DNA from: Camelus dromedarius
Taxonomy: Eukaryota
Length of the DNA: 64,000 bases
Reading direction: 5' to 3'
NCBI RefSeq assembly: GCF_036321535.1
Contig: NC_087438.1
Span: forward strand, 115,320,001 to 115,384,000
Shown: positions 37,036 through 37,497 of the stretch, in pieces
Position numbering within the stretch: the stretch's first letter is position 1
Layout: each line of letters starts with the position of its first letter
Program-made: the position numbers and the translations under genes
The notes under the pieces: model-generated
What the model saw: only the letters and a program-made list of their open reading frames with translations
The model's database searches: none
What the model was told of the DNA's origin: nothing

Positions 37036-37497
37036 ATGTCGCAGCAGCAGCAGGGGTGCTCTCCGCCGCTGCGGCAGGGGACACGGCGGAGCACAAGGCG
37101 CCGATCGAGGGGCGACATTGTATTCCAGGTGCTGAAGCAGCAGGTGTCCAGCGACGCAGTGGTCGTACTGCACTTGATGGAGCGGGACCTCTTCAACCAG
37201 ATGGCGCGCGGGGTGACCCGGCTTAGGCGAGAGGGCGCGGATGTACACGGCGAGCGCCGGGCCACCAGTACTGCTGAGATCAGCGCCGCACTCCGGTCGT
37301 TACTGTCCCCGAGAGCTGCGCTTCATGCCCGCTCATCTTCCTTCCAGGCGCGTGGCCGGCGGGTGGCCCGCTTGCTGTCCGCTCTAGTCCGCAGGAGGGG
37401 GCCCTGCCGGTGGTCCCTTCGGAACAGGCCCCGCTGCCGAATGCTTGCGGGAAATCGCGGGTTTACAGATACAGCTCGGTTATCATCCAGGCTGTAG
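37036..37497 (+). CDS. Highly divergent histone H2B-like protein (153 aa, intronless); functional variant or recent pseudogene
   Basis: Manual alignment to canonical H2B: [138 protein letters not shown]. That is 25/69 identities in three gap-free blocks. Basic N-terminal tail [10 protein letters not shown]. Confidence 0.65.
   Translation: [153 protein letters not shown]

Follow-up and report, generated by a model that had tools for sequence, protein, structure and literature searches.

A 153-amino-acid open reading frame (ORF) on the dromedary contig NC_087438.1 (RefSeq assembly GCF_036321535.1) is a transcribed, very divergent gene derived from histone H2B. It runs on the plus strand, uninterrupted by introns, from an ATG to a TAG at positions 37036-37497 of the window, by which we mean the whole stretch of 64,000 nucleotides (nt) analysed here (Camelus dromedarius, contig positions 115,320,001 to 115,384,000); all coordinates below are counted from its first letter. 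The ORF is probably the camel member of an unnamed, H2B-derived lineage that extends across therian mammals. The lineage is clearly functional in marsupials, and we put the chance that the camel protein is still functional at about even.

Descent from H2B and orthologues

The original prediction, made from the DNA letters, had described an intronless, Arg-rich ORF that retains many CpG dinucleotides and whose residues 28-105 align with canonical H2B in three blocks (25 of 69 residues identical), with a deletion of five residues in loop L1 and an insertion of five before the L2/alpha3 region. The sequence is as described there, and BLASTP returned essentially the same alignment: residues 29-105 match residues ~39-115 of canonical H2B at 27 of 83 positions (33%), with a 5-residue gap at L1 (the HPDTG region) and an insertion before L2/alpha3 that in this alignment counts six residues. 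When 177,635 PDB sequences were searched with the camel ORF using phmmer, 164 matched at E<=10; all 60 matches listed are H2B chains (E 8e-7 to 4e-3), among them three tandem or fusion constructs and one chain carrying a depositor's mislabel. The profile of the family described below gives the same H2B-only picture against PDB as the single ORF, and hhalign aligns this profile with H2B at a probability of 92% (E 5e-7). A protein-language-model atlas places the camel ORF among clusters of H2B, H2A, CENP-W and CENP-X.

The basic residue of the camel protein is Arg (32 Arg to 1 Lys, isoelectric point 12.0), where canonical H2B uses Lys (6 Arg to 23 Lys), and 15 of the arginines lie within residues 106-153, in keeping with the Arg-rich tails noted earlier. 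The CpG dinucleotides are indeed retained, the observed/expected ratio (o/e) being 0.95 at a GC content of 0.66 in positions 37001-37500 against 0.05-0.2 in the flanks. Both acidic-patch glutamates of H2B (the E of PGEL and the E of SEG) are replaced, an H2B-type alphaC helix is not kept, and the KRST motif of L2 has given way to a lengthened acidic loop. In the opossum, the counterpart of the acidic-patch and alphaC region reads PSQLRVQPLHN.

The family is small. Searches covered 5.8 billion proteins and 1.84 billion cluster representatives; an exhaustive profile search found eight relatives, and a final word-indexed search with the ORF of a divergent copy (contig L012) found no further ones. 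The relatives comprise a mis-spliced dromedary 'hypothetical protein', unnamed proteins of argali sheep and reindeer, several unannotated ORFs in assemblies and an opossum RefSeq protein. In placentals the gene is unannotated, and in dromedary that model is all there is. The opossum protein (Monodelphis XP_007483409.1, 'histone H2B.1, sperm-like' in RefSeq) recurs identically in a second didelphid assembly (XP_044531130.1), and its use as a query added a 'histone H2B-like' protein of the Tasmanian devil (Sarcophilus harrisii) and a sugar glider protein. We found no paper in the literature describing these marsupial 'H2B-like' models, whose names are automatic. The opossum protein is 37% identical to the camel ORF (E 2e-9 pairwise, 1.2e-6 database-wide) and 34% identical to H2B (E 5e-12 pairwise; E ~6e-9 in PDB, where it matches 180 chains, all of them H2B).

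Orthologues adjoin the same C2H2 zinc-finger gene in sheep, reindeer, probably pig, other eutherians and three marsupial lineages. On a marsupial contig (L010), the first exon of this zinc-finger gene is found ~10 kb before the start of the H2B-like gene and on the other strand, the same divergent orientation as in camel. Because sequence similarity and synteny agree, we regard the opossum and camel genes as orthologues, and the lineage therefore predates the marsupial-placental split. The original prediction had left room for a lineage-restricted variant; the syntenic marsupial genes instead make it a therian lineage.

Selection, expression and erosion

Constraint is strongest in marsupials. 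Two didelphid assemblies differ by 10 changes in 450 coding nt, all of them synonymous, while the flanks of the gene are 84-92% identical between them, and between marsupial orders the dN/dS ratio (omega) is 0.08-0.18 in the fold and ~0.8-1.0 at the C-terminus. For placentals, the locus was aligned between camel, argali sheep (L001), a probable pig (L002) and another cetartiodactyl (L006), and a codon-model likelihood test was applied to six artiodactyls. Omega is 0.377 for codons 25-105 (p=2.3e-5 against omega=1) and 0.41 for codons 1-127 (p=7e-7). When all six frames were refitted, the H2B-like frame alone combined omega<1 with the absence of stops in every species; the antisense frame, in which the wobble positions are the same, gives a matching omega, as expected, but has stops, and the other four frames give 0.8-3.0. 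The 387 nt of fold and C-terminal tail carry no frameshift across the six artiodactyls and no indels in four species, versus 30 indels in the next 600 nt. The only indels of the ORF, of 3 and 6 nt, fall in the N-terminal tail. When changes in the fold were polarised against the other lineages, 10 synonymous and 11 nonsynonymous changes were assigned to the camel branch (p ~0.035 against a rough neutral expectation of 27%), the replacements being mostly swaps among L, V, I and M; the corresponding numbers for the L006 branch are 10 and 6 (p=0.003). These patterns point to moderate purifying selection on the fold through artiodactyl history, the camel branch included.

The C-terminal extension of camel, pig and L006 has an omega of 1.37, not significantly different from 1, and its camel branch carries 2 synonymous and 12 nonsynonymous changes, several of which created arginines. 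The Arg-rich tails look like the outcome of neutral drift. The original prediction had suggested that they fit a role in sperm chromatin compaction, which is unsupported because the tails are the least conserved parts of the protein: the C-terminal tail evolves as if neutral, a stop in ruminants removes its last 25 codons, and the N-terminal tail changes frame relative to an upstream ATG between species.

The H2B-like gene is transcribed. Fourteen RNA or probable-RNA runs of a sister species hold 0.68-0.76 of the sampled words of positions 36880-37720 (841 nt), a share that is the ceiling expected at ~1% divergence; some of these runs comprise no more than 24-88 million letters, and two are metatranscriptomes labelled 'reproductive system'. 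When a stretch of three times the length (36140-38500) served as control, nine of the 14 dropped below 0.32, the smallest share listed, which is what a discrete ~0.8-kb transcript would give.

A second line of evidence comes from contig L017, of the same study as the L002-type contigs (probable pig). Its positions 440-1150 match the camel locus only over 36990-37709 and are followed, 24 nt after the AATAAA, by a poly(A) tract; the flanks are unrelated. The match is 66-68% identical to every parent copy, and its ORF runs in frame from the upstream ATG into the fold. The contig ends in what we take to be a suid PRE-1 short interspersed element. Because the match is confined to the extent of the mRNA, ends in a poly(A) tract and lies between unrelated flanks, we read it as an old processed retrocopy, and the parent mRNA was therefore intronless, polyadenylated at the AATAAA site and present in germline cells. 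Germline expression, as originally proposed, is thus supported indirectly by the RNA runs and by this retrocopy, and we infer that expression is specific to germ cells.

A number of observations weigh against a working H2B-type gene in the camel. Concerning descent, neither the camel ORF nor its eutherian relatives nor the opossum protein matches the Pfam Histone model (PF00125) even at E<=10, whereas a control H2B scores 86 bits; of the profile comparisons that the original prediction had called for, phmmer and hhalign recognise H2B and Pfam stays silent. For the camel protein, an AlphaFold model based on an alignment of the family alone reaches a predicted local distance difference test score (pLDDT) of 52 (helices 25-36, 39-48, 50-68 and 75-120), a Foldseek search with it gave no meaningful fold matches (RbcX and designed helical bundles), and the input alignment of the opossum model discussed below included one canonical H2B. 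Concerning expression, 0.39-0.65 of the control stretch is present in several larger runs and in four additional transcriptomes of the reproductive system, which cover the flanks too, and the tissue information consists of the label 'reproductive system' alone. Because an upstream ORF (uORF) overlaps the main ATG in camel, translation of the 153 codons needs leaky scanning, as it does in sheep and L002, where the upstream ATG is likewise out of frame. Concerning constraint, the nucleotide identity of the ORF (0.82) is not above that of its flanks, and since raw identity is no higher there, the case for coding constraint is carried by frame, indels and omega. Three ruminants (sheep, reindeer and a third) have in common a TAG at camel codon 129, with loss of the last 25 codons, and omega within ruminants is 1.6, not significant on a short tree of low power. 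Of two divergent copies, L012 has an ORF of 117 codons that extends through alpha3, with a frameshift beyond, and L011 (65% identical) has a 146-codon ORF with the same start and stop and prolines in alpha2.

Many of these points would also be expected if the locus in camel, and perhaps in all living eutherians, were a transcribed relic, that is a unitary pseudogene in slow decay, whose ORF has stayed open since stops are rare in a GC-rich CpG island and whose omega below 1 stems from older branches. Such a relic is favoured by the ancestral start being out of frame and the 47-codon overlapping uORF in camel, by the neutral C-terminal tail, the stop and omega shared by ruminants, the frameshift of L012 and helix-breaking prolines of L011, the ORF identity being no better than that of the flanks, and a deletion of seven residues in L1, relative to marsupials, in all eutherian copies. 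It does not account as readily for the synonymous and conservative excess in the fold on the camel branch alone (10:11) and, more strongly, on the L006 branch (10:6). Nor is it suggested by 387 nt free of frameshifts in six artiodactyls while the flanks are rich in indels, by purifying selection that lasted long after the L1 deletion, or by the CpG island and transcription being kept. We consider a relic the less likely reading, although it is the most serious of the alternatives; for the camel copy itself, the evidence is divided between a late-stage relic and a working gene under weak constraint.

Selection could instead preserve a non-coding function, such as a CpG-island promoter or long non-coding RNA together with a 3' block that holds two E-boxes, and the H2B-like frame would then be a passenger. 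As this explanation would have it, conservation is higher in the 3' untranslated region (3'UTR) and the last 15 codons than in the stretch coding for the fold, and it is so even in ruminants and L012, where these codons are untranslated or in another frame. It leaves unexplained, however, a frame-specific omega of 0.38 without stop columns when four other frames give at least 0.8, the indels in multiples of three and the all-synonymous divergence between the opossum assemblies, and we hold it to be improbable.

The opossum model has helices at residues 49-61, 71-101 and 110-120 separated by loops of nine and eight residues, without alphaC, and its pLDDT is 58-80 and 63-80 across the fold. In Foldseek its top match is H2B (5g2e_D, probability 0.99, 34% identity), followed by MHF, NF-Y, CENP-W and H2A, although the E-values (at least 0.16) are weak. 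In the camel model, a break of two residues stands at the position of L1.

The most probable history begins with a gene placed head-to-head with the same C2H2 zinc-finger gene since before the marsupial-placental split, from which an mRNA of ~0.8 kb is probably made in the germline or reproductive tract. The marsupial product is a strongly constrained protein of 143-150 amino acids, probably with a complete alpha1-L1-alpha2-L2-alpha3 fold and without an H2B-type alphaC or acidic-patch residues. On the eutherian stem, L1 was probably shortened by those seven residues, the fold being kept under moderate selection while both tails drifted. The fold most likely still pairs with an H2A-type partner through a histone handshake. 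The protein probably acts outside the canonical nucleosome, as is suspected for H2B.L and H2B.N, because L1 is missing, the L2 KRST motif is replaced and both acidic-patch glutamates are lost. The eutherian gene is probably now eroding unevenly across lineages.

Gene structure and neighbourhood

Coordinates of the gene, its control elements and its neighbours in the window
Feature	Position	Strand	Remarks
First coding exon of the C2H2 zinc-finger neighbour	about 32684..32860	-	Divergent orientation; gene of ~535 amino acids
CpG island over promoter and ORF	36500..37500	.	GC 0.59-0.66 and CpG o/e 0.59-0.95, against 0.05-0.2 in the flanks
CCAAT box 1 (in CATCCAATCAG)	36723..36727	+	Kept in camel, sheep and L006; degenerate in L002
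CCAAT box 2 (in CAGCCAATTA)	36754..36758	+	Identical in all four aligned artiodactyls
CRE (cAMP response element)-like element TGACGCCA	36869..36876	+	~25 nt upstream of the TATA box; TGACG core kept in four artiodactyls
TATA box (TATATAA)	36896..36902	+	Conserved in artiodactyls; marsupial form (C/G)ATAAAA(A/G)GCC
Upstream ATG and 47-codon uORF (MKEKEAGSRVTRRRRC...)	36992..37135	+	Out of frame in camel, 44 nt before the main ATG; overlaps the main start
H2B-like ORF, 153 codons and stop	37036..37497	+	ORF call, phmmer, BLASTP, hhalign
N-terminal tail, codons 1-24, Arg-rich, poorly constrained	37036..37107	+	Holds the only ORF indels (3 and 6 nt); pairwise omega noisy, 0.44-2.85
Histone-fold region, codons 25-105 (alpha1, shortened L1, alpha2, lengthened L2, alpha3, start of alphaC)	37108..37350	+	H2B alignment; omega 0.377; no indels or stops in six artiodactyls
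C-terminal extension, codons 106-153, neutral as protein	37351..37494	+	Omega 1.37, not different from 1
3'UTR	37498..37716	+	Mean identity 0.875, against 0.818 for the ORF; end set by the poly(A) position of L017
Polyadenylation signal AATAAA	37687..37692	+	Kept in seven of the eight aligned copies that reach it; damaged in L012 by a 5-nt deletion
Downstream tRNA pair	42750..43207	+	Intron-containing tRNA at 42750-42855; tRNA-Glu-CTC at 43136-43207

The gene is a replication-independent, histone-type gene of ~0.8 kb, intronless and polyadenylated. A histone 3' stem-loop (Rfam Histone3) was found neither in positions 36000-38900, even at E<=1, nor at the gathering score anywhere in the window. 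The opossum promoter likewise has two CCAAT boxes, and a TGTGAC..CCATG..GGG block ahead of the TATA box is recognisable in marsupial promoters. The CRE-like element may be a CREM-type site, and transcription is predicted to start at ~36925-36930.

The upstream ATG is conserved in camel, sheep, L002, L006, reindeer and two further contigs (L016 and L011). The fold lies in its frame in L006, reindeer and the retrocopy L017, but not in camel, sheep or L002. Ancestrally, translation probably began at this codon, because the start that it gives (MKEKEAG...) resembles the marsupial start MDEETST.... At the other end of the transcript, the 3'UTR is conserved even in the divergent copies L011, L012 and L017. 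Positions 37440-37716, that is the last ~15 codons and the 3'UTR, are better conserved than the codons of the fold, even after the stop in ruminants and in another frame in L012. This block holds two CACCTG E-boxes (37511 and 37644) and a GGTTAGAATCCAGGCACCTGGACC stretch, and its conservation suggests a separate non-coding function, as a 3'UTR element or an enhancer.

A second dromedary assembly (GCA_000803125.3, contig L008) is 99.8% identical to the window sequence and encodes the same protein. Across 1.2 kb of the gene it has two differences only, at 36925, where transcription is predicted to start, and at 37393, the latter a synonymous AGG/CGG at codon 120. The dromedary model mentioned above (P0003, Cadr_000005069; 170 amino acids, L008:10001-11609, window 37036 to ~38640) joins codons 1-88 of the H2B-like ORF to a downstream 'exon' starting near 37849. 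We consider it a prediction artefact, because the second 'exon' is without support in the ORFs of other species. A minus-strand ORF of 210 amino acids (36633-37265) overlaps the promoter and the first half of the H2B-like ORF, whose wobble positions it shares, so that it mirrors the omega of that ORF. It was rejected, having stops in other species and running through the promoter.

A zinc-finger gene on the minus strand and a tRNA pair do flank the H2B-like gene, as the original prediction had it, although the name ZNF692 that it gave to the former is not confirmed. The neighbour may be ZNF692, going by that name and by the N-terminus of the human protein; an atlas search with its first exon returned noise only and no name. 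A second CpG island (33000-34000, GC 0.63-0.65, CpG o/e 0.62-0.85) sits immediately ahead of the first coding exon of the zinc-finger gene and presumably serves as the promoter of that gene. Each of the two divergent genes has an island of its own, with ~3 kb between the islands, and they share no single bidirectional promoter. Among the tRNAs, the one at 42750-42855 is a 106-nt, apparently intron-containing tRNA recognised by Rfam and missed by ARAGORN, and a third tRNA (Ala-AGC, 19189-19261) lies beyond the 3' end of the zinc-finger gene.

Relation to named H2B variants

In their survey of 18 mammals, Raman et al. (2022, PMC8857922) found five H2B variants to be broadly present. Their alignment contains sheep H2B.L, H2B.N, H2B.W.1-3 and H2B.K with cow and pig equivalents, H2B.N being pseudogenized in pig. 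Compared by eye, the sheep orthologue of the camel gene (P0004) is unlike H2B.L, H2B.W and H2B.K of sheep, cow and pig and unlike H2B.N of sheep and cow. Six family-diagnostic motifs, eutherian and marsupial, are absent from all 12 supplementary files of that study. Literature searches turned up neither a paper that connects ZNF692 with an H2B gene nor a more recent account of another mammalian H2B variant. The original prediction had taken the gene for a candidate new or lineage-restricted variant, and these comparisons agree that it is none of the named mammalian variants. They point to a new therian, H2B-derived variant that the 2022 survey would have missed and that is set apart from the named variants by an eye comparison.

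It is very improbable that the camel gene is instead the orthologue of a named variant (H2B.L/subH2B, H2B.N, H2B.W or H2B.K). Resemblances exist: with H2B.L and H2B.W it has in common the absence of introns, the link to the germline and the fast evolution, and with H2B.N the lack of a functional alphaC. However, sheep has its own H2B.L, H2B.N, H2B.W.1-3 and H2B.K, all unlike P0004, and the family motifs are missing from the supplement of the survey. Moreover, the H2B.N and H2B.K genes contain introns (PMC8857922), against an H2B-like ORF that is uninterrupted and collinear with the processed retrocopy. H2B.W lies on the X chromosome, according to the text of PMC9526256 between RAB9B and SLC25A3, and the camel gene is flanked not by these but by the C2H2 zinc-finger gene and tRNAs. 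The possibility that GC-rich DNA has by chance yielded an ORF with a fortuitous likeness to H2B, for which the modest single PDB E-values (~5e-4) and the silence of Pfam might be cited, can be set aside as negligible, given that all 60 listed PDB matches are H2B and of no other family, that the ORF is kept in at least eight species with selection specific to its frame, and that the marsupial orthologue matches H2B at E 6e-9.

Mammalian germline histone variants are material for studying innovation and turnover among chromatin proteins. We propose, tentatively and at a little short of an even chance, that the gene represents a sixth mammal-wide H2B clade, at least as old as the marsupial-placental split and strongly conserved in marsupials, whose eutherian form, without L1 and acidic patch but with a histone fold kept under purifying selection over tens of millions of years, would be a germline protein working outside the canonical nucleosome. 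If this is true, a therian-wide lineage at a fixed locus would be added to the five variants of the 2022 survey. Marsupial constraint and the stages of placental erosion would form a natural series on which parts of the fold (L1, alphaC, acidic patch) are dispensable under selection. Marsupial biology would gain a testable germline chromatin gene, and eutherian annotations would be shown to miss one.

The closest known sequences are the marsupial RefSeq models, which share with the camel ORF the motifs QVL(K/R)QQ, DLF and EI.AAL..LL, the lengthened acidic L2 and a promoter with CCAAT and TATA boxes. They differ in having a full L1 loop and, from the first ATG, a 50-residue N-terminal tail that is acidic and Ser-rich and then basic, and in a fold omega of 0.08-0.18 against 0.38 in artiodactyls. 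Among the named variants, H2B.L (subH2B, H2BL1; subacrosomal) is likewise intronless, testis-linked, fast-evolving, repeatedly pseudogenized and probably non-nucleosomal (PMC8857922), but it lies at another locus, and the sheep, cow and pig proteins keep L1, alphaC and ~40% identity to H2B. No named H2B is more divergent than H2B.N, which has neither alphaC nor the acidic patch and is also suspected of a non-nucleosomal role (PMC8857922); it has an intron, is expressed in oocytes and is a pseudogene in pig, whereas the H2B-like gene lacks introns and is intact in the contigs that probably come from pig. H2B.W (H2BW1/2) is a very fast germline variant with variable N- and C-terminal tails and, by eye, has a comparable LS(R)(D/E)(A/S)V stretch at the start of alpha2. 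It is X-linked, retains both L1 and alphaC and reportedly arose in eutherians, in contrast to the older H2B-like lineage beside the zinc-finger gene. Finally, canonical replication-dependent H2B has the same histone-fold ancestry (33% identity over residues 29-105), from which the camel gene departs in its AATAAA signal in place of a 3' stem-loop, its Arg for Lys, its deleted L1, its lengthened L2 and its replaced acidic-patch glutamates.

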